This document shows, one piece after another, positions 18,853 to 64,000 of a stretch of DNA of 64,000 bases. The position numbers were made by a program, and so were the translations under genes. Source of the DNA: Macrostomum lignano (lineage: Eukaryota); NCBI GenBank assembly GCA_002269645.1, contig NIVC01000644.1, forward strand, positions 62,001-126,000, read 5' to 3'. The notes under the pieces were generated by a model, which worked only from the letters and a program-made list of their open reading frames with translations, searched no databases and had not been told where the DNA came from. Numbering within the stretch: the first letter of the stretch is position 1; each line of letters begins with the position of its first letter.

Positions 18853-20494
18853 ATATATACAAAAAGGGCTTTTTAAGCTAAGCAATCATGAATCAATAAC
18901 TAATAGACATAAAAACCTTTAAACATAAAAAATGAATTATTGTATTTGTAAGTTAGCTACTTATAATTATGCATTGAATTTGATTTAGATTTATGAATAA
19001 GAAATTTTAGACCTAGAATAGTCTAAAACTAAAGCATGACTATTTTCACTGGAAAAGCATATACATGTATTTTTACTTTAGATTTAACTTTGCACTTGTA
19101 GTTGTACTCAATAATATATCAATGACTAACGTCTAACTATCCTAAATTGATACTACTAACTATGCATGACACTGACAGTACAGTGGTCATTTTAATGTGA
19201 TTGAGATGTGATGATAATGTTTAATATCTAATATCTAAAGTTGATTTGTTAATACTCTTTCAAATAATATTTAAAAAGAACTGGTTCAGTCACCATCCAC
19301 GCCGTTTTGGATTTCAGGCTTGCTTTTTAGGCCTGTTAGTGTTAAGCTTCTTCGGACTTAAGTATTCGTTTTACTCCAACTGCCCCTTAAAATCAAATGC
19401 AATGAATCCGCAAATGCACGATATGTGCGCATTAAATTGTGAATAAATACATATAAATTACGAAGTACCAAGCTAATGATTTTAAAATTAGCACTGTGAC
19501 TGTGACTATCCATAAATCCATAATCTATCCATGGATTCCATGCCATCCAATCTAACGGACCTAACTGCTTCACTTAATTTCTAGTAAAATACACATTTCG
19601 TACACATTAAAAACATGATAAATTTTTAGGTGCAGTAAAACACAGTATACAACCACTGTATTTTTACGCTTAATTATTTGTATTCTAAATAAACTTATTC
19701 ACTATTTGCGTAAACCAAACATTACGAGCATCTAAATACGCTTTTGCGCTGAAATTTAGGATTTTATGTAGAGACTTGCACGTAACATGTAGCCTACTAC
19801 AACAGCTTCTACCACTCCCCTTGCGACTCCATACAACTAGTAGTTCGTTTCAAACGCACAGCACGCTTTGTTTCTAGAAATAATCCCAACAAAAGCAGAC
19901 GAAAACGCGAACTTTTTTGATTAGTTTTATACCTCAAGAGAGAAAATAGCGGAGCGATTGAATCAAATATATATGATTTATTTAGTTAGCTAAGTCGAGT
20001 AAACCAGCGCGATGGTTAATAGCATAGGGCAGAAGGAAACAAATAAGTTAGAAATTAGCGGATGTGGGAACGCGAAAAAATAGAACAAACAAACATTAAA
20101 TAATTAAACAGACAAAATGTTGTTAGACAAAAAATTTCAAGCCTTTTCTAGCTTTTTAGAGTGAAAAAAGTATAAAATATGATTTCATTATTTAAATTCA
20201 AATTGAAACAAAACGAACAAAGTATGCTAGGATTTGCTGTTTGGCAGCGAAGCGGCAAAACACCGCCAGAATAATGGGCATCTGGCTACAAAAAAATAAG
20301 TATAAATAACCAAATACGAAATTACGCTAGGAGTGAAACTAGGCAGCCGAAGCAGTTTTCATGAGCAAGAAGCTGCGTGTAGTTAATTAGTTCGATTCAA
20401 TACGATTATAGGGTAAGCACATTAGAATAGCGAAACAGCTTTTAGGAGTAAAAACCTAGGCTGTAAGTGATATGCTTGGCGGGATTAATAATAG

Positions 20495-22045
20495 GGACAT
20501 CATATTCCCGATTGGGATAATTATTAATTAGCTATGGGATCTCAATATTCCCGATTGGGATAATTATTAATTAGCTATGGGATCTCAATATTCCCGATTG
20601 GGATAATTATTAATTAGCTATGGGATCTCAAATTCCCGATTGGGATAATTATTAATTAGCTATGGGATCTCAAATACCCGATTGGGATAATTATTAATTA
20701 GCTATGGGATCTCAAGATTCCCGATTGGGAGAATTATTAATTAGCTATGGGATCTCAAATTCCCGATTGGGAGAATTATTAATTAGCTATGGGATCTCAA
20801 TATTCCCGATTGGGAGAATTATTAATTAGCTATGGGATCTCAAGATTCCCGATTGGGAGAATTATTAATTAGCTATGGGATCTCAAATTCCCGATTGGGA
20901 TAATTATTAATTAGCTATGGGATCTCAAATTCCCGATTGGGATAATTATTAATTAGCTATGGGATCTCAAGATTCCCGATTGGGAGAATTATTAATTAGC
21001 TATGGGATCTCAAATTCCCGATTGGGAGAATTATTAATTAGCTATGGGATCTCAAATTCCCGATTGGGAGAATTATTAATTAGCTATGGGATCTCAAATT
21101 CCCGATTGGGAGAATTATTAATTAGCTATGGGATCTCAATATTCCCGATTGGGAGAATTATTAATTAGCTATGGGATCTCAATATTCCCGATTGGGATAA
21201 TTATTAATTAGCTATGGGATCTCAATATTCCCGATTGGGAGAATTATTAATTAGCTATGGGATCTCAATATTCCCGATTGGGATAATTATTAATTAGCTA
21301 TGGGATCTCAAATTCCCGATTGGGATAATTATTAAATAGCTATGGGATCTCAAATTCCCGATTGGGATAATTATTAATTAGCTATGGGATCTCAAGATTC
21401 CCGATTGGGAGAATTATTAATTAGCTATGGGATCTCAAATTCCCGATTGGGATAATTATTAATTAGCTATGGGATCTCAAATTCCCGATTGGGAGAATTA
21501 TTAATTAGCTATGGGATCTCAATATTCCCGATTGGGAGAATTATTAATTAGCTATGGGATCTCAATATTCCCGATTGGGAGAATTATTAATTAGCTATGG
21601 GATCTCAATATTCCCGATTGGGAGAATTATTAATTAGCTATGGGATCTCAAGATTCCCGATTGGGAGAATTATTAATTAGCTATGGGATCTCAATATTCC
21701 CGATTGGGAGAATTATTAATTAGCTATGGGATCTCAAGATTCCCGATTGGGAGAATTATTAATTAGCTATGGGATCTCAAATTCCCGATTGGGAGAATTA
21801 TTAATTAGCTATGGGATCTCAATATTCCCGATTGGGAGAATTATTAATTAGCTATGGGATCTCAAATTCCCGATTGGGATAATTATTAAATAGCTATGGG
21901 ATCTCAAATTCCCGATTGGGAGAATTATTAATTAGCTATGGGATCTCAATATTCCCGATTGGGAGAATTATTAATTAGCTATGGGATCTCAAATTCCCGA
22001 TTGGGAGAATTATTAATTAGCTATGGGATCTCAGTACCCGATGGG
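20495..22045. repeat. 42-43 bp minisatellite gggatctcaaattcccgattgggagaattattaattagctat
   Basis: About 36 units. Confidence 0.97.
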
Positions 22046-22726
22046 GATAGTAGTCAAGTAAAATCGAGCACATTAGCAATGGAAAACAAATAACACGAGC
22101 AGCCGAAGCAAAGGCCGAACACAGAACAAAGAGTTGTTAGCAACAGGCGATGGTGAAAATACAGGGTAGCATTGAGGGCATTTCAGATACCCATCCAGCT
22201 TGAAGCTTACGCGCGAGCCAAGGAAGATTAGGATGGGAAAAAATCAGTCACAATGTCTGCGATGCGTCCCTGATTTCTGAATTAGCTTTGGTTAATGTCA
22301 TTAGTACTAATAGCATACATTATTAGATGCAGGCCGCTTCAAAGGAACTCACTTTAATGACACTTTGAAAGCGAGGTGAAACTCGAGAGCAGCTCATATT
22401 TACAAAAAAGTGAATTTGTCAGGACAAAACACGACTCACTGCAGGTGCGGTTGATATGACGGTGTTGCCATGATTTGTGTCTTCTGTTAGAAATAACTGA
22501 AGCTTGGTAATGAGAGGCTTGGAGCACGCGGCCAAATAAACAAGGAAAAAATAAACAGAATCAACAAGTGGGAACATACAGAATAGAAGATAGCAGAATA
22601 AGCAATAATTTTATAAATTCAAGCCATATTCTTTGTCCAAAACTGCGACAAAGGCATGCCGGGCGAGTCGCAGCGAGTGAGCGTTTAAATTTTTTCCTCA
22701 GGTCTTTGAACATCGGCATCAGGCAA

Positions 22727-23572
22727 TAAACAGCCCTCAGAATCAGGCAATAAACAGCCCTCAGAATCAGGCAATAAACAGCCCTCAGAATCAGGCAATA
22801 AACAGCCCTCAGAATCAGGCAATAAACAGCCCTCAGAATCAGGCAATAAACAGCCCTCAGAATCAGGCAATAAACAGCCCTCAGAATCAGGCAATAAACA
22901 GCCCTCAGAATCAGGCAATAAACAGCCCTCAGAATCAGGCAATAAACAGCCCTCAGAATCAGGCAATAAACAGTCCCCAGAATCAGCTCTAAACAGTCCT
23001 CAGAATCAGCTCTAAACAGTCCTCAGAATCAGCTCTAAACAGTCCTCAGAATCAACTCTAAACAGTCCTCAGAATCAGCTCTAAACAGGCCTCAGAATCA
23101 GGCAATAAACAGCCCTCAGAATCAGGCAATAAACAGCCCTCAGAATCAGGCAATAAACAGCCCTCAGAATCAGGCAATAAACAGCCCTCAGAATCAGGCA
23201 ATAAACAGTCCCCAGAATCAGCTCTAAACAGTCCTCAGAATCAGCTCTAAACAGTCCTCAGAATCAGCTCTAAACAGTCCTCAGAATCAACTCTAAACAG
23301 TCCTCAGAATCAGCTCTAAACAGGCCTCAGAATCAGCTCTAAACAGTCCTCAGAATCAGCTCTAAACAGTCCTCAGAATCAACTCTAAACAGTCCTCAGA
23401 ATCAGCTCTAAACAGTCCTCAGAATCAACTCTAAACAGTCCTCAGAATCAACTCTAAACAGTCCTCAGAATCAACTCTAAACAGTCCTCAGAATCAGCTC
23501 TAAACAGGCCTCAGAATCAGCTCTAAACAGTCCTCAGAATCAGCTCTAAACAGTCCTCAGAATCAGCTCTAA
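22727..23572. repeat. Two-variant 24/23-bp minisatellite (caggcaataaacagccctcagaat; cagctctaaacagtcctcagaat) in blocks A-B-A-B
   Basis: Tandem units with a higher-order block duplication. Confidence 0.96.
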
Positions 23573-24304
23573 AGTGATCTCACTAGCGAGCTCAACCTCG
23601 GCAAGTCCCTGATACGGAAATCAGCACGAGAAGTAAAAAAAAACAAGAGCATGCAAAATATAACAAAAAAACGATTTGTTTTACAGACAATCGAAGGAAT
23701 TCAAGCTACTTAATAAAACGGGAAGTAGTATAGTGCGCAAACGTGTACAAAAAATCAGAGCGGCAAAGTACAAATTAAAAATGTAGAACTCTGCTCAAGA
23801 GCAGCAGACAAGCGATCCCTGATAGTCTGCCAGACCACATCGCGGTTAAAGCACAAAATAAGTCCCTCTGTGGCAAAAAATGTGTGAAAATAAATAAAAA
23901 ACACAATAATAGGCCTGATTAGACCTGCCGCTTATTGTTGTGTTGAGCACAATAGCGAACAGGAATCTTAATGCACAATAGGCATACCTGATCAATGTTG
24001 TACATTGGAGCATTAGCAAAATAGTGGGTAACACAAACAATGATAATAATGATGATGATAGTGATTATTCATGTCGAACCTGCGCACCTATGAAGGAATC
24101 TAAACGGATTATTGGGCGCTTAAATTTATGATTACAGCAAAATAGAATCGATCGCTCTAGTGACTACTGACGCTCAGCGGCGGTATAAGTAGTATCATTG
24201 GCAATGGAGTAATGAATTATGAAACGCGGCACTGCTATGGGGTTTCTGAAACACGAGTTAAGCAAACACAGCTGGGTTAGCCATAATGAGACCGTGTTCT
24301 ACTG

Positions 24305-24590
24305 GATGACTAAGCCTATGACTAAGCCCGCATTCAAATGACTAAGCTCATGAGTAAGCCCGCATTCAATGAATAAGCCTATGACTAAGCCCGCATTCAA
24401 ATGACTAAGCTCATGAGTAAGCCCGCATTCAATGAATAAGCCTATGACTAAGCCCGCATTCAAATGACTAAGCTCATGAGTAAGCCCGCATTCAAATGAC
24501 TAAGCTCATGAGTAAGCCCGCATTCAAATGACTAAGCTCATGAGTAAGCCCGCATTCAAATGACTAAGCCCAGTTGCATAAGCCCGTGTT
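24305..24590. repeat. About 32-bp minisatellite atgactaagctcatgagtaagcccgcattcaa
   Basis: About 8 units. Confidence 0.9.
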
Positions 24591-25072
24591 TAAAAAACTT
24601 TCGCCAGGGGCAAAACAAACAAAAGCAGGCAGTAAAACATCAGGGAGTTCCGTGAAAAGACGGCGCCCATCAGAGGCGCAGACAGTTAAACAATTCTAAA
24701 TGATTTTTGGCAACTCAGACACTGAAAGATGTGCGCTGGGCATAATTAGGAAAACACGTATGCTCAGTCAGCAATAGCAGGTCCCAGCCGAAATCCAAGC
24801 TCAAATTCGTCAAAGTATTTATGATGATAATGTCAGAGCGCCCTGAGTCTCGCGCATTCACAAAATTAAACAACTATTCGGTAAAAGCGAAAAAGCAATT
24901 CAGCATTATAAATAATAAATTAACTATTAATGATGGCTTCAATTTTACACACTCGAAGATACTACTGCTATCAACAGAGTAGTGTCATGCGCCAAAATGG
25001 AGCAAAGCCGGAAAAAAAAATTTACCAAAACAGAGCGAATTTTTGTAGCAATAAGAAATGACTTCGTCTGCT

Positions 25073-25080
25073 TGAGGTAG
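25073..25080 (-). promoter_or_regulatory. let-7 8mer target site in the lin-41 3' UTR
   Basis: + strand tgaggtagtcggt equals let-7 nt 1-9 and 11-13; 335 nt downstream of the stop. Confidence 0.75.
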
Positions 25081-25414
25081 TCGGTAAGCCGAAGCAGGAA
25101 CAAGAAGATGACGGCTTCTATCTGGCTCAGCTAGCTGAGAACTACCAGCACGAACTCAATCCCGGCTGCACCACTGAACGGAAACCAAACTCAGCTCTGA
25201 GGTCATTTGAGGTCAACTTTGAAGCTTTTGTAATAACAAAACTATTACTGATACTAACCAATGCCAACTCTGCTTAACTTTGGGTTCGGGTTTGGTGCAG
25301 CAAGGAGAGAGAGAGAGCAAATCAAAGCTCAAGTGAACCCAAAATCAAGCTTGACAGCAGCAGCAATAAAAAATCCCTGAAGTTGAGCAGCGAATGCTGG
25401 AAAAGACAGGCAGC

Positions 25415-28400
25415 TCAGAGCAGCAGGACTCGGTGATTCTCCGAGTCCACAACGGCCAGCTGGCCGGTGCTCAGCACGCACACGCAAGCTGGCCGGTTCA
25501 GCTGGCCGATTTTGCTGCCATTGGAGCCGAAGGCGCGGACGAAGGCGCCGCGCGAATTCAAAATCTGCAGCCGATGGTTGCGCGCCTCGCAGATGATGAT
25601 GTTGCCCTCGAGGTCCACGGCGATGCCCTGGGGGATTTGGGGATTTTTTTGAAACTAGAGATTTAGGGATCTCATAAGAAAAGAAATTGTGGATTTTTAT
25701 GAAACTTGGGACATCGTTAGGATTTTTGATAAATGGGGATTTGGGGATTTTTGATAAATCTAAATTTGTTTTTTTTTGGATTTTTGATAAATGATAGGGG
25801 GTGGGGATTTGGGATTTTTTTATAACTGTGGATTAGGGATTTTTTAGAATCGAGGGATTTGGGGATTTTTTACGCTATGAATTCGGGGGATTTTTTAGAA
25901 TCTGGGATTTAGGGATTTTAATTATAACTAGTGGATTTGGGATCTTTTAAAATCAGCGATGAATTTAGGGATTTTTGGAATCTGGAGATTAGGATTTTTT
26001 ATAACCATGGATTTATGGATTTTTTAGAATCTGGGGATCTGGGGATTTTAATTATAACTATGGATTTGGGATATTTTAGAATCAGGGAATTTTAAGATTT
26101 CTAAAAATAAAACTGGGGATTTGGGGATTTTAATGGAATATTTGAATAAAAAAATAATGAAACGGCAAGCACTGACCTGAGGACGGCAGAACTGGCCCGG
26201 CCCCTGGCCTTCGACGCCCATGAACCTGACCTGCGAGAAGTCGGACTCAATCACCAGGAAGCGATGCAGATTGAAGTCGGTGCACAGCAGCTGGCCAGAG
26301 GAGGTGAACACGATGCCCCTCGGGCAGTCAAAGCTTTTGATTCCGGCAAAGCCGGGGCTGCGGGCGATGGAGAACTCGGTGACGTAATCGCCATCCTCCG
26401 AGAACAGCTGGATGCGGTGGTTGCGAGAGTCTGCCACGGCCAGACGGCCGGCCTTGCCCACAGCCAGATCCCAGGGATAGTTGAACTCGCCCGGGCCCTT
26501 GCCCTGCTTGCCGAACACGCGGATGAACTGCCCGGTCCACGTGAACACCTGCGGTGAGGCCGGCGAGGGAACTCAAGCTTGAAGGGTGCGGAAAGGGTTG
26601 GGCCTGAAGGTTCAGGTGGAAATATTGGCCTGAAGGTTCAGGTGGAAATATTGGCCTGAAGGTTCAGGTGGAAATATTGGCCTGAAGGTTCAGGTGGAAA
26701 TATTGGCCTGAAGGTTCAGGTGGAAATATTGGCCTGAAGGTTCAGGTGGAAATATTGGCCTGAAGGTTCAGGTGACAATATTGACCTGAAGGTTCAGGTG
26801 GAAATATTGGCCTGAAGGTTCAGGTGGAAACATTGGCCTGAAGGTTCAGGTGGAAACATTGGCCTGAAGGTTCAGGTGGAAATATTGGCCTGAAGGTTCA
26901 GGAGAAGCATGGTGTCCTGAAGGTTCAGGAGAAGCATGGTGTCCTGAAGGTTCAGGAGAAGCATGGTGTCCTGAAGGTTCAGGAGAAGCATGGTGTCCTG
27001 AAGGTTCAGGAGAAGCATGGTGTCCTGAAGGTTCAGGAGAAGCATGGTGTCCTGAAGGTTCAGGAGAAGCATGGTGTCCTGAAGGTTCAAGAGAAGCATG
27101 GTGTCCTGAAGGTTCAGGAGAAGCATGGTGTCCTGAAGGTTCAGGAGAAGCATGGTGTCCTGAAAGTTCAGGAGAAGCATGGTGTCCTGAAGGTTCAGGA
27201 GAAGCATGGTGTCCTGAAAGTTCAGGAGAAGCATGGTGTCCTGAAGGTTCAGGAGAAGCATGGTGTCCTGAAATTTCAGGAGAAGCATGGTGTCCTGAAG
27301 GTTCAGGAGAAGCATGGTGTCCTGAAAGTTCAGGAGAAGCATGGTGTCCTGAAGGTTCAGGAGAAGCATGGTGTCCTGAAAGTTCAGGAGAAGCATGGTG
27401 TCCTGAAGGTTCAGGAGAAGCATGGTGTCCTGAAGGTTCAGGAGAAGCATGGTTCAGGAGAAGCATAGTGAAGGATCAAAATTTAATGTCCGGGAGAGCT
27501 TCAGTCCTGTATGTTCAGACGCCAAAGGCCGGGCGCACCTGAACCCGGTGGTTATCCTTGTCGGCAACGTAGATTCTTTTGTCGGAGCTCAGACAGACGC
27601 CTGCGGGCCGGTTGAACTCGCCAGGCCCCTCGCCACGCTGGCCGAACTTTCGCAGGAAGCTGCCGGAGCTGTGCACAATCTTGATCTGGTTGTTGGACCG
27701 GTCTGCAATCACCAGGTTGTCCGCATTGTCGGCGCAGATGCCCCAAGGCCGGTTGAATTCCAGATCGCCGTCGCCTTGACGACCGATGACGCGAACGTCC
27801 GAGCCCAGCTGGGCGTAGTCGCGGGCCTCCAGGGCCGGCAGGACGAAGGGCGAGCCGGGCACGTGGCGGCCGCGGAGCCGCAGGTTGACGGTGATCCGGC
27901 CGGGCCGCTCCGGCACCAGCGTCACCTGCAGACGGGGAGTAATTTTGGGGAGTTTGAAGTGGGATTTATAGATTTTCTTTGGGATTTCCAGTGATTAGCG
28001 ACTGGGTTTTCAGGCAACCTATGGGATTTCTTGGAAAATTATGGGATTTCCTAATGAATTATGGGATTTCCTGGCGAATTATGGGAATTTCCGGTTAATT
28101 ATGGGAATTCCTGCTGAATTATGGGATTTTCTGGTGAACTATGAGATTTCCTGGTGAATTATGGGATTTCCTGGTGAATTATGGGATTTCCTAATGAATT
28201 ATGGGATTTCCTGGCGAATTATGGGAATTCCCGGTTAATTATGGGAATTCCTGCTGAATTATGGGATTTCCTGGTGAACTATGAGATTTCCTGGTGAATT
28301 ATGGGATTTCCTGGTGAATTATGGGATTTCCTGGTGAACTATAGGATTTCCTGGTGAATTATGGGATTTCCTAATGAATTGTGGGATTTCCTCGTGAATT

Positions 28401-30962
28401 ATGGGATTTTCTGGAGAATTATAGGATTTCATTGTTAATAGGTTAATTAGGAAGCGGCCGCACCTGGTACTGTCCCGGAAAGCTCAGCGGCTGCACCTGG
28501 CCGTAGGGATTGAGAGCGGCTGCATCGGCGCAGTCCAATCTCAGGTGCAAATCAATTTCATTGGCCGACACGGTGCAGGGCTGGCGCAGGTGGTCGAACA
28601 CCAGCAGGCGGAAGGCGAACGGCTTGCCAACGAAGGCCTTGTCGCCGTTGGCCAGGGCCAGGCGGCAGAACTGGGCGCAGGCGCTGCTGTACACTGCGCA
28701 GCTGGTGCGCACCAGCCGGGCCAAGTCCAGCGGCGGCTGCACCGAGAACAGGCGCTCGTCCTCCCACGGCTGAGGTGGGTCAGGAGGAATCAGATTGACT
28801 GCTTAAGGTCATGGAAATCAGACTGACAGATTTGAGGTTCGGGGGAGGGGTCATTGGGGCCAGATAATAGATAGACAGTTCAGGGGAGGTCAGACTTGAG
28901 GATAGGGGGTCAAGGGGGTCATGTACTAGATGGACAGTTCAGGGGAGGGCAGACTTGAGGATAGGGGGTCAAGGGGGTCATGTACTAGATGGACAGTTCA
29001 GGGGAGGTCAGACTTGAGGATAGGGGGATAAAGGGGGTCAGGTACTAGATGGACAGTTCAGGGGAGGTCAGACTTGAGGATAGGGGGGTCAAGGGGGTCA
29101 GGTACTAGATAGACAGTTCAGGGGAGGTCAAACTTGAGGATAGGGGGGTCAAGGGGGTCATGTACTAGATGGACAGTTCAATGGAGGTCAGACTTGAGGA
29201 TAGGGGGGTCACGGGGTCAGGTATTGAATGGACAGTTCTTAGGAAGATCAAAGAAGGCACAAAAGCAGCCATCCAGCCAGCCGCACCTGCAGCAGGTAGG
29301 TGAGATCGGCTCCGGCCCCAGCCTCGATGAGAGCGGCCCGCTGCTCCTGAAGGGTGGCCAGTTTCAGGGTCTTGACCTGCAGCAGGGCGGACGCGAGCTG
29401 ACTCTCCCGCTCGGCAACCAGGTCGCGCAGCTGCCTGAAGTGCGCCCGCACCCGCTGGGCGACCTCGTCGTACTGGGCGGCGACGCTGTTCTCCTTCTGC
29501 TCCAGCCGCTCGATGGCGCCCGATACAGCCGGCTGGCCCGCGCCGCCGACCTGCCGGCTCCACGGCGGCAGCAGCGGCCGCTTGCTGGCGCCGGCACTCG
29601 GGCTACCCGGACCGGCGGCCGACGGCGGGGTCGGAGAGGACGCCGCCGCCGCAGCCGCAGCCGCTGCAAGCGGTACGAGGCGACTGGAGGTGGCGCCAAC
29701 CGGCCCAGAGCAGAGGGAGGAGTGGCGGCCGCTGCCGACACAGTCAGGACAGACGCGCTGGCGACAAGACGGGCAGACCGACTGCGGGATGGGAAAGGCG
29801 TTTTCTAGAGGTCACACGAGGTCAAATATCAGCCTGGATCTTAGCAATTGAGCTCGTAAGAATAAATTTCAGAAAAAAGTTTATAGATGTCAAACAAGGT
29901 CAACAGATGTCAAACAAGGTCAACAGATGTTAAACAAGGTCAACAGATGTCAAACAAGGTCAACAGATGTCAAAAAAGGTTAACGGATGTCAAACAAGGT
30001 CACAGATGTCAAAAAAGGTTAACGGATGTCAAACAAGGTCACAGATGTCAAAAAAGGTTAACGGATGTCAAACAAGGTCACAGATGTCAAACAAGGTCAC
30101 ACATCTCAAACAAAGTCAACATATGTCTAACAAAGTCAGAAGATGTCAAACAAGGTCAACATATGTCTAACAAAGTCAACAGATGTCAAACAAGGTCAAC
30201 ATATGTCTAACAAAGTCAACAGATGTCAAACAAGGTCACAGATGTCAAACAAGGTTACACATCTCAAACAAGGTCAACATATGTCTAACAAAGTCAAAAG
30301 ATTTCAAACAAGGTCACAGATGTCAAACAAGGTCGCAGATGTCAAACAAGGTCACAGATGTCAAACAAGGTCGCAGATGTCAGTCAGATCACAGAGGTGC
30401 AAAGATTGTAAATCAGTACCTGAGTACTGCAAGAGGCTTGGCAGTGACAGCAGCTTGAGTAGCCTCCGCCTCCCCCGAATCCAGCGACACTGGAAGGCGA
30501 CCGGAGCCCGCCGACAGCGCCGTTAGTCAGCGGCTGACGAGTTGGCGAAGCAGCGTCAGACCAGAAAGGCGACGCAGCCGGCGGCAGCAGGAAGTCGGCG
30601 CCGTTGCTGGAGCCGGCAGGCGAGGCCGAGTTGTGGTTGTCGTGAAGCTGAAGGCCCAAGGACAGAAACCGGCTGCTGCCGATGGCTTGAGCAGATGGTT
30701 GAGCACTGCTAGACGATGAAGGCATCTGCGGCTGCTGCTGAGCGAAGGACTTCTCAGAGACCAGACTCAGGCCGGACAGCCCGGTGTCCAGAAACAGCTG
30801 CTGCTGCTGAGTCAAGAAGTCTTCGCCACCGCCGCGACCATCGTCAACAAGAGGAAACAGCTGGGCCGCCGCTGCGCTGCCACCGCAGCTGCTGACGATG
30901 CCGAAGGCGCCGCCGCTGTACAGGTCCTCGCCGACTCCGCGCGAGTTATTAATATCGGACAT
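25415..30962 (-). CDS. TRIM71: TRIM-NHL protein LIN-41/TRIM71 orthologue, about 771 aa (B-box-like, coiled coil, filamin, 6 NHL; no RING); exons 30962-30420, 29781-29287, 28769-28464, 27925-27539, 26548-26177, 25627-25415
   Basis: Six phase-0 GT-AG exons. NHL repeats closely match recalled TRIM71 (RPWGI..IADRSNNQI, FNRPAGV..VADKDNHRVQVF, FNYPWDLAV..DSRNHRIQLF, FDCPRGI..TDFNLHR, FCRPQGIAVD). Filamin end GRHVPGSPF. B-box-like CCHC..CPSCRQRVCPDC..H spans the exon 1/2 junction. Confidence 0.92.
25630..26140. repeat. Degenerate ggatttggggatttttt repeat (TRIM71 intron 5)
   Basis: Recurrent motif, diverged units. Confidence 0.8.
26600..27465. repeat. Two adjacent 26- and 27-bp minisatellites sharing the palindromic core cctgaaggttcagg (TRIM71 intron 4)
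   Basis: About 11 units of ggcctgaaggttcaggtggaaatatt, then about 21 of gtcctgaaggttcaggagaagcatggt. Confidence 0.96.
27950..28435. repeat. 20-bp minisatellite gaattatgggatttcctggt (TRIM71 intron 3)
   Basis: About 20 units. Confidence 0.93.
28860..29240. repeat. About 60-bp G-rich minisatellite (TRIM71 intron 2)
   Basis: Six units of gatggacagttcaggggaggtcagacttgaggatagggggtcaagggggtcatgtacta. Confidence 0.93.
29885..30382. repeat. 19-20 bp minisatellite cagatgtcaaacaaggtcaa (TRIM71 intron 1)
   Basis: About 25 units with variants. Confidence 0.93.
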
Positions 30963-31365: not shown

Positions 31366-32213
31366 TAAAATCGCCAAAATATTCTAACGCAGGCTTGTAA
31401 ACTTCTATTTCAAGCCGAAAATTTCAAATTTGTTAGAAAACGCCAATAATCCTACTAAAAGTAGCAATATAAGTAAAATGACAGAAAAATAATTAGCAAA
31501 AGCAGAATTTCAATTGGTAGTAAGATAATATATTTAGCTAAATGATTCGCAGACAGACAAACAGATGGGAAGTCAACAGACACGATTACCATAGCAACAA
31601 ACAGATACGAGCGCTTTGTCGACTACCAGATTTCACTTGTTACAAAGAATACAATACCCTGAATTATTTTAAAAAAACGTTAAGAATCAAATGGAAAATG
31701 CCAGGCGTCACCCCGCGTGTCATCAGCCTTTTTAACTTTTAATTTGTATGTAAAAACTACACAAATGAAATAAGAGTTAAAGTTGACGCAGAACACACAA
31801 CACTTACAGAATGAGTAAGAGAATTTAGAAAAAAATTAACAAAAATAATTAATTATAAATAAATAAAACGAGACGAACTGATCATTGCGCACAGCTGATG
31901 CAACAATTTATACATATTTTATGCAGTTTGCTGCCAAGTTTACGCGCGCACTTACTACTACACTACTGCTAGTAATATATAATAGGTAGTATACTGTATA
32001 CAGAGTTTGCTCACATTATTCAGCAAAACTTATAATTGTTAATAAGAGTGAATTAATGTATTCATTAGCGGCAAACAGTTAATAAAGCTGACCGGGACCT
32101 CACATTGAGTTGCAGAATTGCAAATGTACGACCGAATTCAGCGTATGGCCTACATCAGCTGGAATTGGAGAAGTACGGCTTGGAGTTGCATTGCTGCAGC
32201 ACAAATCTGCCAT

Positions 32214-35200
32214 CTAAGCAAAGCTTTCATAATTCAAAGCAGACTGACAGGCAGTCCTCACCTCTTTAATAGCGTCCTTGATGAATGGCTTGCGATCCGA
32301 GATGTCTATTGGCTCGAATTTGGCGTACACCTGGGTGGTCATTGGTTTCAGGTGTGTTTATATACAGGGGTTAATGGTATGTTTATATACAGGGGTTAAT
32401 GGTGTGTTTATATGCCTTTATGGTGTGTTTATATACAGGGGTTAATGGTCTGTTTATATACAGGGTTAATGGTGTGTCTATATGCCTTTATGGTGTGTTT
32501 ATATACAGGGTTAATGGTGTGTTTATATGCCTTTATGGTGTGTTTATATACAGGGGTTAATGGTGTGTTTATACACAGGGTTAATGGTGTGTTTATACAC
32601 GGGTAAATGGTGTGTTTATATACAGGGTTAATGGTGCTTACATGGCTTTATAGTGTTTATACATTGGCTAATGGTGTGTTTATACAGCGGTTAATTGTGT
32701 ATTTATACAGTGGCTAATGGTGTGTTTATACAGCGGTTAATGGTGTGTTTATACAGTGGTTATTGGTGTATTTATACAGCGGTTAATGGTGTGTTTATAC
32801 AGTGGTTATTGGTGTATTTATACAGCGGTTAATAATGCGTTTATAGAGTGGTTATTGGTGTGTTTATTATCGGTTTATGGTCTGTCTATACAGTGGTTAA
32901 TGGTGTGTTTACAAAGGCTTATGGTGTTTTTATCAGCGGCTAGTGTTTATGATGTATTTATACAGTGGTTAAAGATGTTTATCATCGGTTTATGGTGTGT
33001 TTATATGGTTTTCTGTAGTTTATAGGGGTTCCTTGTTGTGTTTAGAGTATGTTTGGTTGTGCTCAGAGTCAGCCCAAATAAAGATAGCGAATTCGAAGAC
33101 AAACTGCACAGCTGGCTGCTAGTGAAGGCAGACTCACCTGCTTAATAGCCTGGCTGAGCATGAGATTGTCCAAGTCCGCCTTGGCCAGCACATCCGCCAC
33201 CGCCTGCTTGATCTCTTCATCAGTTGGCGGCTTCTTTGGCGACTCCTGTTCTTCCGGCGCAGTCTTCAGCTTCTTCAGCGGCATGTCGTCTTCGTCTGAC
33301 GAGTCGGCTGCCGCCCCGCCGTCAGAGTCCGACGACACCGACGCCTTGCGCTTGCGGCTGGCGCCACCGGCCGGCTGCCTCTTGGCTGGCGAAGCCGCCT
33401 TCTTTGCTGGCGTCTTCTTTTTCGTCTTTTGCAGCTTTTTCTTTTTTTTCTTGGCGTCGGAATCGTCGGAGTCGGAGGCGTCGGACCCGCTGCTGCTGCT
33501 GCTGCTCACCTGGTCGTCTTCTTCTTCCTCCCCTTCGCTGCCGCTGCTGGCGGCCGCTTTCTTAGCCGGCTTCTTCTTTTTGCCAGCCGATTTGCTGCTA
33601 GAAGCAGCAGACTTGGATTTCGAAGACTTGGAGGATTTCTTCTTGCCGCCGCGGCCCTCCTGCATTAGCTGGAATGACAGCTTCTTCGGCGGCTTCTTGC
33701 CGTTGTCGAACGGCTTAACAAGAAACTCGCACAGTCGCTGCGCCATGTCGCGGGTTCCGCCGCCGCTACCCTGCGAGCGCTCCAGGTCCAGCGCGAACAG
33801 GCTCTTCTTCAGCTCCTTCACCTTGCGCGACGCCGCCCGGTCAACCAGGCGTTCGAATTCTTTCGAATCTTTGCTAAACTCGAAGCCGTTGAATTCAAGC
33901 AGGTTCTTTCGAATTTCGTTGGCCACGCCGGAGCGGTTGAAGATGAGGCTGTGCAGCAGCTTCAGGTCGTCCGGCTTGCTCTGGTACATGAAGTACAGCA
34001 CCCGGGGGCAGTCCCGCAGCTTCGTGCCCCGGCCCTGGGGCAGCACAACCCGGCTGTCCACGTGCTGCTGGTACTGCTTGTCAATCACCTCCGATAGGCG
34101 CTCCACCTGCGCAAGGTCAGAGTTTAATTGGGTTTGTTAGCGTCCCTAGCAACGAGATAAAACCTTAATTAGCGTCTTTGGAAAGAGTAAATCAAGTTAG
34201 CGTCCCTAGAAAATAGGTGTTGCTAATCCTTGCTCAAATAATCATAGCAACAAGGTAGCTCGAGCACCTGTCCTCATAGCAACAAGGCAGTTCGAGCATC
34301 TGTCCCCATAGCAACACGGTAATTCGAGCATTTGTCACCATAGCAACAAGGCAACTCGAGCATTTTTACCATAGCGACAAGGCAATTCGAGCATCTGTCC
34401 CCATAGCAACAAGGCAATTGGAGACCCTGTCTCATAGCAACAAGGCAACTCGAGCATTTGTCCCCTTAGAAACAAGTAAATTAGAGCATCTGTCCCCATA
34501 CCAACAAGGCAATTGGAGACCTTGTCTCATAGCAACAAGGCAACTCGAGCATTTGTCCCCTTAGCTCGTAGAAACGATTAAATTAGAGCATCTGTCCCCA
34601 TAGAAACAAGGCGACTCTAGCATTTGTATCCATAGCAACAAGGCAGTTCGAATCTGTCCCATAGCAACAAGCGACTCAAGGGTTTGTAACCTTCGAGCTT
34701 CGAGAATCTGTCCCCATATAGCATCAAGACAACTTAAGCATATGGCCTCTGCACCAAGGCAACTCGAGCATTTGTCCCATAGCAACAAGGTAGTTCAAGC
34801 CTGTCTCCATAGCAACAAGGTGATTAGAGTCTGTCCCCATAGCAACAAGGACAATAAATTTATAAGAACGCACGCATATTTGGGAATTCCAGTTCTTAAA
34901 GAGTGCAGTTTTTTTACCTTCTTTCTATCCCGCCGCATCCCCTCGCGACTTGGCGTTGGTGGAGCCGGCGACTCGGCTGGTCGACGACTTTTCTGCGTTG
35001 GCGAAGCCTTCGGCTTTGGCTTGGCCGCCTGCTTTTTCTCATTGGCTTCCTTAGAAGCTCCAGCAGGCTCACTGTTCTCCATCTTCTCCTCGGCAGACTT
35101 AGCTGGAGAATCGGCGCCATTGGAAGCCACCGGGCTGGCTTTCAAGTTGTCTGCGGCGGCGGCGGCGGAGTCTCCGCTGGGTGCAGCTGGGGCCGACTGG

Positions 35201-35220
35201 TCGCCAGTTTCAGTTGCCAT
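32214..35220 (-). CDS. DEK: DEK chromatin protein; exons 35220-34918, 34106-33138, 32330-32262(32214). C-terminus uncertain: read-through to TAG 32214, or a short intron and last exon ending near 32150
   Basis: GRGTKLRDCPRVLYFMYQSKPDDLKLLHSLIFNRSGVANEIRKNLLEFNGFEF matches the recalled DEK N-terminal/SAP region; PPTDEEIKQAVADVLAKADLDNLMLSQAIKQ|VYAKFEPIDISDRKPFIKDAIKE is DEK-C; phase-0 GT-AG joins. Confidence 0.92.
32360..33010. repeat. Degenerate about 25-bp minisatellite tggtgtgtttatatacaggggttaa (DEK intron 2)
   Basis: Tandem units decaying toward the right. Confidence 0.9.
34130..34850. repeat. About 32-bp minisatellite cgagcatctgtccccatagcaacaaggcaatt (DEK intron 1); units contain X-box-like motifs
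   Basis: About 18 diverged units. Confidence 0.88.
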
Positions 35221-35838
35221 GGGCCTGATTGCGATGCAGCATGCATGGTATTGCCAGTAATTATAATTGTTTTTGAGCATAATAAATGATGCTCTACAAC
35301 TAATAATGAGCATTTCTATTTGTATGCATCAGTAAAACCTAGAGTGATCGGAGCCCAAATGTACTTTTAATGGACAAAAACCATTGCAAACAATTCCTAC
35401 ATAGGACAAGCATACTGTATATGCTGCACCAGCAACACATTACTAAAAGTAGCTTTATGGACGAGACTGCGAAGATCAAATTTCTCAGTTGCCAAGCCAT
35501 GAGCAATAGAAGATGATCTACAGAAATGCTCAACTAAAGAGTCATGACTACAGCGAGGAGATATCAGCAAGGTTTCTAAGAAAAAGAATATGCTCAAATA
35601 TTCTTAGTAAGCCACTAAATGAAGTTAATAAAGGTCAGATTAAAGATCTGGCTAACACTATTATATATTATCTACCAAATACAATAATTGACATTATTAT
35701 CAACACTGCTGACTAGCATATATAAACTACTATTTTACAAATCTGAGTAGACATGCATGCCAAGATTAAAGCTGCTATAAATGGTCAAGCTATAAATTTT
35801 GGGCAGAATACCTAGTTTTCTAATGATATAACTATAAC

Positions 35839-41187: not shown

Positions 41188-43546
41188 CCCCGCCAACACT
41201 GATGGCACGCCAGGCGTGCCATGGGTCTCATTTAACCATACACTGAGAATACGTGTCTATGGCCCAGATGGTTTAGCATAAATGACTTTTCCATATCCCC
41301 ATAAGTCACGGATGGCATGCTGTGCGTACCATGTTATTGTTTCACAATTTTTTAACTATATTTGACTGCAAGTACAAGATAGATAACAAAAACTTTAAAA
41401 GCGGACAACAAAAGAACAAAAAACAATTAGGTAAACAATATTTAAAACATCAATGAGGCATTTAGGAGGAGCGTTTTGAATTTCGTATTCTGAACATAAT
41501 TAAGTTTTGCACCATACTACCAGTGCAACTACTGTGCTGCTGCAGTGTGCGAATTCTGAAAGCATGGGACAGCACACAGCTCGGGCTCTCCTGGGCAACC
41601 AGCGCATACGAACACCGTTCTTTTGGCCACATCGCTTTGTTGGCCTCGCATTGGCATCTGTCGGCGGCAGCTTCGATGGCGCGTGCTGTGAGATGGCCTT
41701 GTGCTTCAATGTATTCAGGCGTTTGCCCCGGCCTGTCTGCTCCATGAGAGTACAGATCACAGCTTCCAAAAATTCAACGAATTTGATATCGCTTCCTCCT
41801 TGGCAATTGCAGATCCAGGCATTGCGGACCAACTGCAGCAAAATGTGGAACCCGAGCTTCTGGTGCCATCTGTATGTTCTTCTCCCCGCACTGTAAGGCT
41901 GCAGTGCTGCATCAAGGCGATCAACGCCTCCCATGTACTTATTGTACTATAGCACCGAATTCGGTTTTAAAACTGACTTCTCCGCTCCGCCTCGGATCAC
42001 TCGCCTCACTTCCGTGCTTTCAGCAACACCGTGCGTGTCCAACAAGTACACAGTTTTGCGACCGCTTGCCTTCCTATCTACCAGCTTGACTGCGAGAACA
42101 TCGCCGCGGCACATCTGGGAGTGACTGACGGGTTGCAAGGGCAGCACTTTCAGCTCATTCGGCACACCTCGATTGGGCCTCACTGTCCCAGTCAGTAAAG
42201 TACTGCGTTCTAGCAGAAACTGTGCCAGATGGAGCCATGTGAACTAGCTGTCACAGAAGACCTTGTACCCTAGGTCCAGCAAATTTTTACTCAATTCAAC
42301 AACGATCTTCTCGCTCATCGATAAATTACCGCAGTTTAATCCATCTCCAAACTTGTCGTTATCCTGCTTAGCAGCATGTACATGAAAGTTCCACAGAAAA
42401 CCTGTCAAAGCTTCCGTCAAGCAGTAGACCTTGATGCCGAATCTGGCACGCTTGTTGGGCATGAACTGCTGGAAAATGAGCCTGCCCTTGTACATGACCA
42501 GTTCTTTATCAACAGACACCTCTTGATGTGGGCTGTAATTTGCTTGGCAAATATTGTGGACAATGTTAAGAAAAGGTCGAATCTTTTTCAAGGAGTCCTG
42601 TTGGTTGTCAGTGGTGCAGTTGTAAAATCAAAGGAATGATAGTATCTGCACAAACCGATCCCTTCCAAGGCAATGTTCTTTCTGGAAGTATTTGCCGCTG
42701 TAGAAGTCTCCCGTGGACCAGTACATGTGCATTTCGGGCTTCTTCACAAGACCCATGTACAGGATGATTGCTAGTGACTTCTTCACCTCATTGTCGGTAC
42801 ACGGTCTCCAAGTTGATAGCAAATTGGGAAGAGCTCCGTCCTGATCTTCAGCTGTCAAATGTTGAAGCTCCATGTCAGCTTGGGCGTTGGTCCAGATGCA
42901 AATGGCAGACACCAGATCAGTGGTGAGAAAGTGCTGCAGATAGAATTGCACCTGGGCCATTTTACCTTCAGGAGCTTGTGCTTGGATGTCTGGGTTCAGG
43001 CCAGGCACAGTGAGGAATTCGGGCAGATCGCTGAGACGCGAATCTTCACCATCTTGAGCAGTTGTCCATTCATTCTTGTTGGCGAACTCGACTCCATGCT
43101 CAGCTACTTCACCATTACTCTCACCATCTTCCTCGTCCAGCAACTCTTCATCGACACTCATATATTCGCTGTTGCTGCCGTCACTGGTGAAAACAGAACC
43201 TTCCATAATTGCAATTGCAGCATCATCAATGTTGTTAGCCATGATTTTGAGTCTCGCGTAAGTTTAATTAATTATACAGTAAAGTTGGACAAGTTTGTGG
43301 TATCAGTAAAAATTTACTGCATGATTCTGGACTGTTTTACCATAGATAGTTTTAAAATAAACTGTAGTATCAGTCAAGTGCAAATTTTAGGACAGTTGGA
43401 ACTCAATAGTTAAGTAAGCCAGTCAGTAGTCTATGGGAATTTCTTGAGCCGTAAATTGACACAGTGCTCTATGGCAGTGGGAAAGAGATTGAAGCCCCAT
43501 GGTACGCATGGCATGCCATCCGTCAATAGTGACTGTGCGCTACTGG
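41188..43546 (-). mobile_element. Decayed piggyBac DNA transposon, about 2.3 kb
   Basis: TTAA at 41184-41187 (alternative 41232-41235) and 43547-43550; subterminal inverted repeats gatggcatgccatgcgtaccatg; internal transposase relic. Confidence 0.88.
41529..43242 (-). pseudogene. piggyBac (PGBD4-like) transposase pseudogene
   Basis: One frame with stops at 42628-30 (TGA), 42244-46 (TAG) and 41947-49 (TAG). Motifs SVDKELVMYKGR, KRARFGIK, VFCDS*FT, GTVRPNRG, YNKYMGGVDRLD. Frameshift in the C-terminal Cys-rich domain (CAGCPGEPELCAVPCF). Confidence 0.92.

Positions 43547-56263: not shown

Positions 56264-64000
<7,737 letters not shown>

Follow-up and report, generated by a model that had tools for sequence, protein, structure and literature searches.

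The stretch of DNA considered here, referred to below as the window, comprises 64,000 nucleotides (nt) of the Macrostomum lignano contig NIVC01000644.1, and all positions given are those of the window. Its minus strand carries a gene of the LIN-41/TRIM71 type, in which a filamin repeat precedes the NHL repeats, and the 3' flank of this gene holds the sequence CUACCUCA, which is probably a canonical target site of the microRNA (miRNA) let-7. The same flank holds two seed matches to miR-125/lin-4, and the neighborhood is completed by a DEK-like gene, the remnant of a transposase and a large number of minisatellite arrays.

The TRIM71-like gene is made up of six coding blocks, recovered from the minus strand by three-frame translation (30962..25415), with GT/AG borders and all of them in phase 0 (Table 1). 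The predicted product has 771 amino acids (aa), and its filamin repeat and NHL repeats are both recognized by Pfam, the Filamin match (E=6.6e-07, 30.5 bits vs a cut-off of 26.9) lying directly before an NHL match (E=4e-49) of five scored repeats, as would be found in a C-terminal six-bladed NHL propeller. Over its whole length, this filamin-NHL half can be aligned with zebrafish TRIM71/LIN-41 (structure 6fpt; E=6e-96, 325 bits), and given that the alignment extends to at most 1 residue from both C-termini, thus reaching the last residues of the two proteins, the stop codon of the model can be taken as the true C-terminus. In a comparison restricted to solved structures, the TRIM71 score of 325 bits is followed by those of Drosophila Thin (210), TRIM2 (141), TRIM3 (135), Brat (106) and Mei-P26 (78). 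The assignment of the gene to the LIN-41/TRIM71-type filamin-NHL genes is supported by these alignments.

An exhaustive HMMER search for UniRef relatives returned three relevant proteins, all from M. lignano (Table 1), and the splice junctions of the model are confirmed by these entries, the junction between exons 1 and 2 by A0A1I8I3L1; a search for homologous proteins with exon 3 alone gave no match. Codon usage and runs of Ala/Gln had at first pointed to a dipteran gene (wech/dappled), a reading that was set aside in view of the M. lignano entries. When compared with exons 2-6, A0A1I8FMU9 presents a change of I to M, of EFNRPAGVCLSS to ASVCLGS and of NGSK to NAAK, which points to a further copy of the gene or another haplotype, or else to assembly differences. 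The M. lignano genome is partly duplicated (PMC5730564). All five introns of the TRIM71-like gene hold a minisatellite array (25720-26100, 26603-27475, 28020-28430, 28847-29238 and 29885-30382), and further arrays flank the gene at 24306-24572, 22727-23573 and 20500-22049.

The putative let-7 site lies in the unique sequence that follows the stop codon. At 25070-25089, the plus strand reads gcTTGAGGTAGTCGGTaagc and the minus strand, which has the sense of the mRNA, reads accgaCTACCTCAag (in a longer read of the minus strand around the site, ...cuuaccgaCUACCUCAagc...). A pattern search of the window returned a single copy of the 8mer CTACCTCA, at 25080..25073 of the minus strand. Within it, direct reading shows that CUACCUC (25080..25074) is the reverse complement of the let-7 motif GAGGUAG and can form Watson-Crick pairs with let-7 nt 8-2, while the A at 25073 of the minus strand stands opposite let-7 nt 1. 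As the TGA stop of the model occupies 25417..25415, the first base of the site, which is on the sense strand, is nt 335 counted from the stop. An earlier note on this DNA had given the same distance from the stop, together with pairing to let-7 nt 2-9 and 11-13 and an A opposite nt 1; the former is borne out by the six-exon gene model and the latter by the letters of the strand. The note had also described this site as the only one of its kind downstream of the stop, which agrees with a search of the 5.4 kb after the stop, where no other 8mer, 7mer or 6mer seed match to let-7 was found.

Supplementary pairing is usually credited to miRNA nt 13-16 and calls for an unbroken run of 3-4 pairs or more with its centre in that region. 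When the pairing of the site is judged against canonical let-7 (UGAGGUAGUAGGUUGUAUAGU), the five bases on the 5' side of the seed match fall short of productive pairing of this kind, given that contiguous Watson-Crick pairs cover only nt 11-13 and that nt 14-16 are unpaired in register. The RNAduplex energy of let-7 with the site is -19.6 kcal/mol, that of the top let-7 duplex across the 1.8 kb past the stop, in which the runner-up duplexes reach -15.8 kcal/mol or weaker and have no seed match. The base pairs formed by nt 9 and by nt 11-13 are real but marginal, and as evidence they are weak, adding little because they are few, because they fall outside the usual supplementary region and because the 3' half of canonical let-7 has to be assumed for M. 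lignano. Thus, the extended pairing put forward in the earlier note exists as a set of pairs, but these are marginal and do not cover nt 13-16. Extra let-7 sites were sought by means of a scan that permits G:U seed pairs and of a duplex scan, and the only candidate from this search, ACUAUACUACUUC (23734-23722, minus strand), was rejected. It combines a CUACUUC seed that has one G:U pair with an ACUAUA match to the 3' end of let-7 (-14.9 kcal/mol), and, located 1.69 kb after the stop and beyond a minisatellite, it is probably a chance match and irrelevant.

Table 1. Features of the TRIM71-like gene and of its 3' flank, with the M. lignano proteins that match the gene model
Feature	Position or length	Strand	Basis or remark
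Coding exon 1, low-complexity N-terminus starting MSDINN	30420..30962	minus	Translation; start codon inferred
Coding exon 2, Cys-rich remnant, Ala/Pro-rich linker, likely coiled coil	29287..29781	minus	Without Pfam domain
Coding exon 3, filamin/Ig-like domain	28464..28769	minus	Pfam, UniRef alignment
Coding exon 4, end of filamin and first NHL repeats	27539..27925	minus	Pfam, TRIM71 and UniRef alignment
Coding exon 5, NHL repeats	26177..26548	minus	Pfam, TRIM71 and UniRef alignment
Coding exon 6, last NHL repeats and stop	25415..25627	minus	AG acceptor, phase 0
TGA stop	25415..25417	minus	UniRef A0A1I8FMU9 ends identically
Unique sequence from stop to first downstream minisatellite, minimal candidate 3' untranslated region (UTR)	24573..25414	minus	842 nt
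miR-125/lin-4 7mer-A1, UCAGGGA	25374..25380	minus	Seed match 35 nt after stop
Predicted local stem CUGCU(U)/(A)AGCAG, CUACCUCA left unpaired inside	25068..25097	minus	Predicted fold
Five bases 5' of let-7 seed match, ACCGA	25081..25085	minus	A:U9 pair, G/A10 mismatch, ACC with nt 13-11
Putative let-7 8mer, CUACCUCA	25073..25080	minus	Seed match nt 2-8 and A opposite nt 1
miR-125/lin-4 7mer-m8, CUCAGGG	24841..24847	minus	Seed match 568 nt after stop
A0A1I8FMU9 (P0003), "E3 ubiquitin-protein ligase TRIM71"	507 aa		99% identity, model residues 259-771
A0A1I8I3L1 (P0137)	196 aa		100% identity, model residues 71-266
A0A1I8FAC9 (P0140), frameshifted model	393 aa		73% identity, best stretch residues 478-771; begins at exon 3 sequence

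The probability that the 8 nt of the let-7 seed match are unpaired is 0.73 according to RNAplfold, which corresponds to the 99.5th percentile of the 3' UTR. The local stem in which the seed match is left exposed is no more stable than shuffled sequences (z=-0.62), and for this reason the fold serves as a description rather than as a sign of selection.

Besides the let-7 site, the 842-nt stretch carries the two miR-125/lin-4 seed matches listed in Table 1, on which the earlier note is silent. At least two miR-125 7mers are present in 0.4% of the shuffles of this stretch (P=0.004), and the probability of the same co-occurrence, when estimated from the frequencies of 7mers over the whole window, is approximately 0.003-0.02. 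The 3' flank holds no miR-100 site, in agreement with the reported absence of mir-100 from flatworms (PMC3384580). The combination of let-7 sites with those for lin-4/miR-125 has been described for Lin41 across Bilateria (PMC4382986), and the presence of the miR-125 pair and of the let-7 site in one and the same flank matches that pattern.

For the interaction with let-7, the miRNA itself has to be available in this lineage. Among the small-RNA reads of M. lignano, sequences 100% identical to the let-7/let-7a of miRBase were counted at 22-26 reads per million (rpm) in whole worms (Zhou et al. 2015, PMC4604429, Suppl. Table 2) and at 55-70 rpm on day 3 of regeneration, in a library in which vertebrate-only miRNAs are at zero (PMC4604429). 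In flatworms, let-7 and mir-125 retain perfect seeds, while the let-7 paralogs diverge outside the seed (PMC3384580). The "conserved miRNAs" of M. lignano in Suppl. Table 2 of PMC4604429 also include vertebrate-only miR-122, miR-103/107, miR-101, miR-106 and let-7c to let-7i, which are concentrated in the libraries of irradiated worms and of dividing cells. The strong rise of let-7 in irradiated, stem-cell-depleted worms was considered as support and rejected, because the library in question also holds miR-122, miR-103/107 and let-7c-i.

The reading of CUACCUCA as a canonical 8mer let-7 target site of the M. lignano LIN-41/TRIM71-type gene is, in our assessment, the probable one. If it is correct, Argonaute loaded with let-7 would, once let-7 accumulates in differentiating cells, bind the exposed seed match and recruit GW182 and the deadenylation machinery, through which both translation and the stability of the mRNA would fall, an effect that the two miR-125/lin-4 matches may strengthen. 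Two steps in this sequence are ones that we infer, namely the presence of let-7 and of the TRIM71-like mRNA in one and the same cell and the repression of the mRNA. The earlier note had already proposed a let-7 target at this position, and the proposal is favored by the gene family, the strand and the position of the site, its improbable placement, the miR-125 sites and the published let-7 reads, whereas the gene label has to be qualified and the extended pairing is marginal.

A number of points weigh against the proposed let-7 site. Even with the threshold relaxed to E<=10, Pfam recognizes nothing in the N-terminal 375 aa of the predicted protein, neither RING nor B-box, and there is no Cys-rich open reading frame (ORF) between the TRIM71-like gene and the DEK-like gene upstream of it. 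A Cys/His-rich stretch that spans the junction of exons 1 and 2, CCHCQASCSTQSVCPSCRQRVCPDCVGSGRHSSLC (remnant CCHCQASCSTQSVCPSCRQRVCPDCVGSGRH), resembles a degenerate B-box by eye, and the region after it seems heptad-like. One-to-one orthology with lin-41 would be a matter of the filamin-NHL half only, and there may be other TRIM-NHL genes in M. lignano. As for the lin-41/TRIM71 label of the earlier note, it is sustained by the filamin-NHL architecture and by TRIM71 being the nearest relative among the solved structures, but the RING and B-box that would complete it are not detectable. Only one let-7 site is present, and known lin-41 orthologs usually have two or more. In addition, the predicted accessibility is poor for each of the two miR-125 sites, with an unpaired probability of 0.01 for the one at 25374..25380. 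With regard to the small-RNA data, the presence of vertebrate-only miRNAs suggests that the libraries of PMC4604429 in which they occur are cross-contaminated, and contrasts of expression drawn from these need care.

The end of the mRNA is a further point of this kind. From 25414 to 22358 on the minus strand, over approximately 3 kb after the stop, there is neither AATAAA nor ATTAAA, and because of this the gene would be expected to have a non-canonical signal or else a UTR so long that it includes minisatellites. The first canonical signals on this strand are an ATTAAA, 3.06 kb from the stop at 22358, and an AATAAA at 19982. The mature 3' UTR would probably cover the let-7 site and might contain an intron, and its real end is not predictable from the sequence. 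Unlike the minus strand, the plus strand has many AATAAA and ATTAAA motifs within 22358-25414. Data on 3' ends, from CEL-seq with T-fill, have been published for M. lignano (PMC5173321, PMC5730564), and no statement on the usage of poly(A) hexamers was found in the two M. lignano papers searched for one.

The main rival explanation, which we regard as unlikely although it deserves to be weighed with care, is that the 8mer arose by chance in the 3' flank and has no regulatory effect in vivo, or a negligible one. The number of copies as such would fit this explanation, since the 8mer is not enriched over the two strands of the window (1 found vs 1.59 expected), and so would the presence of one site only, the ease with which a few random bases can supply pairs at nt 9 and 11-13, and a local fold no better than shuffles. 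It is the location of the single copy, on the other hand, that chance accounts for poorly. Of 5000 dinucleotide shuffles of the unique 842-nt stretch that follows the stop, 0.5% contain the 8mer (P=0.005), and the value rises to P=0.011 and P=0.026 when the UTR is assumed to extend over 1.4 kb and 3.4 kb, respectively. The site is not within any repeat of the window, in which the 842-nt stretch is itself unique, and the sole copy in the 128 kb that its two strands make up together is found where prior biology predicts it, on the sense strand and just past the stop of a lin-41 homolog, a placement that is improbable by chance. The co-occurrence of the two miR-125 seed matches and the predicted accessibility of the let-7 seed match argue in the same direction. 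Furthermore, 8mer sites tend toward measurable repression even when they are not conserved, provided that the miRNA and the mRNA are expressed together, which counts against a match of negligible effect.

A second alternative, and quite an improbable one, is that the let-7 site is left outside the mature mRNA, either through cleavage and polyadenylation before nt 335 by means of a non-canonical signal or through the removal of an intron from the 3' UTR. While the lack of a canonical poly(A) signal in the 3 kb after the stop would leave room for such an early end, none of the 13 poly(A) hexamers tested is present in the 334 nt that separate the let-7 site from the stop, and the first variants to appear are CATAAA at 24823-24818 (592 nt after the stop) and TTTAAA at 24594-24589 (821 nt), both of them beyond it. 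Besides, the miR-125 match at 568 nt is sensible only if the UTR passes the let-7 site.

The idea that TGAGGTAGTCGGT, on the plus strand, belongs as the 5' part to a divergent miRNA gene of the let-7 family, antisense to the UTR, is so improbable that it was rejected. Although TGAGGTAGTCGGT matches let-7 nt 1-9 and 11-13 and flatworm let-7 paralogs are divergent outside the seed (PMC3384580), Rfam at gathering thresholds has no match in the whole window, and hence no let-7 locus, and at E<=10 returns two chance-level matches for 24500-25500, with no let-7 or other miRNA family. The plus-strand fold of 141 nt does not surpass shuffles (z=-1.15), the 21-mer does not lie in a long hairpin arm and no extended inverted repeat partner was detected within 400 nt.

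Comparison with the known systems shows both likenesses and differences. The let-7/lin-41 pair is among the oldest known pairs of a miRNA and its target. In C. elegans lin-41, the two let-7 sites lie close together, their seeds are imperfect, with a bulge in one and a G:U pair in the other, and they depend on extensive 3' compensatory pairing; unlike this pair, M. lignano has one perfect 8mer with marginal 3' pairing. In vertebrates, TRIM71 has two let-7 sites, both conserved, and encodes a protein with a RING finger, two B-boxes and a coiled coil, whereas M. lignano has one site and a predicted protein in which no RING or B-box is detectable. Drosophila Wech is also devoid of a RING finger, and the M. 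lignano protein recalls it in this respect.

On the side of the likenesses, the repression of lin-41/TRIM71 by let-7 through seed matches in the 3' UTR is established knowledge for LIN-41 in C. elegans, for TRIM71 in vertebrates and for Dappled/Wech in Drosophila (PMC3592402, PMC5908797), and the earlier note names lin-41/TRIM71 as the canonical let-7 target in nematodes and vertebrates. As in C. elegans lin-41, with its sites LCS1 and LCS2, the same miRNA would act on a gene of the same filamin-NHL family, through a site past the stop and with a match to the lin-4/miR-125 family in the UTR (PMC4382986, PMC5908797). As in vertebrate TRIM71, a seed-type let-7 site and miR-125 sites follow the stop (PMC4382986, PMC3592402). 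Drosophila dappled/wech, to the extent that it is covered in PMC3592402 (citing O'Farrell et al. 2008), offers the likeness of an invertebrate gene of the LIN-41 subclade regulated by let-7 through its 3' UTR. That case differs in belonging to Ecdysozoa, while M. lignano belongs to Spiralia/Platyhelminthes, and in having come from cell-based experiments, while the M. lignano site is predicted from sequence.

The searchable open literature, the coverage of which is incomplete, yielded no description of let-7 sites in the lin-41 homologs of flatworms or other spiralians, and TRIM71 is mentioned for M. lignano once in the literature found, within a list of genes. The proposed interaction is an expected example of a textbook pair, with a single predicted site. 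If functional in M. lignano, it would carry the let-7/lin-41 pair into the third great branch of the bilaterians, in an animal with abundant adult stem cells and whole-body regeneration. The case would then also bear on the question of whether the conserved role of LIN-41 lies in RNA binding or in ubiquitin ligation, because the target protein appears to be without a RING. [quoted passage not shown] If this were true, the timing module would be pan-bilaterian and independent of E3-ligase activity. Given that a method of transgenesis is established in M. lignano (PMC5730564), a 3' UTR reporter with a mutant seed is feasible.

Among the remaining features of the window, the DEK-like gene (approximately 32216-35313, minus strand) lies directly upstream of the TRIM71-like gene and in the same orientation, with only about 1.2 kb from its stop to the start codon of the latter. 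Its main ORF (33069-34106) has a partial match to DEK_C, its likely last exon ends near 32217, and its poly(A) signal might be the ATTAAA found at 31743 of the minus strand. Farther along, the ORFs of a PiggyBac-type transposase remnant occupy 41500-43242 on the minus strand, where Pfam assigns DDE_Tnp_1_7 to 42628-43242 (E=9e-11), and the ORF at 41500-41934, also on the minus strand, looks like the C-terminal part of the transposase and has no Pfam match. On the plus strand, at approximately 58320-62914, coding-looking blocks interrupted by minisatellites recall the VWA and Cache domains of a protein like the alpha2delta of calcium channels, a tentative likeness given that Pfam returned no match for the fragments tried.

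Finally, minisatellite arrays make up 35% of the window, with periods of 14-236 nt and with units that are nearly all different from one another, and many of them yield long spurious ORFs. In the published M. lignano assembly, simple and tandem repeats amount to 15% (PMC5730564), and the heavy minisatellite load of the window fits this species.

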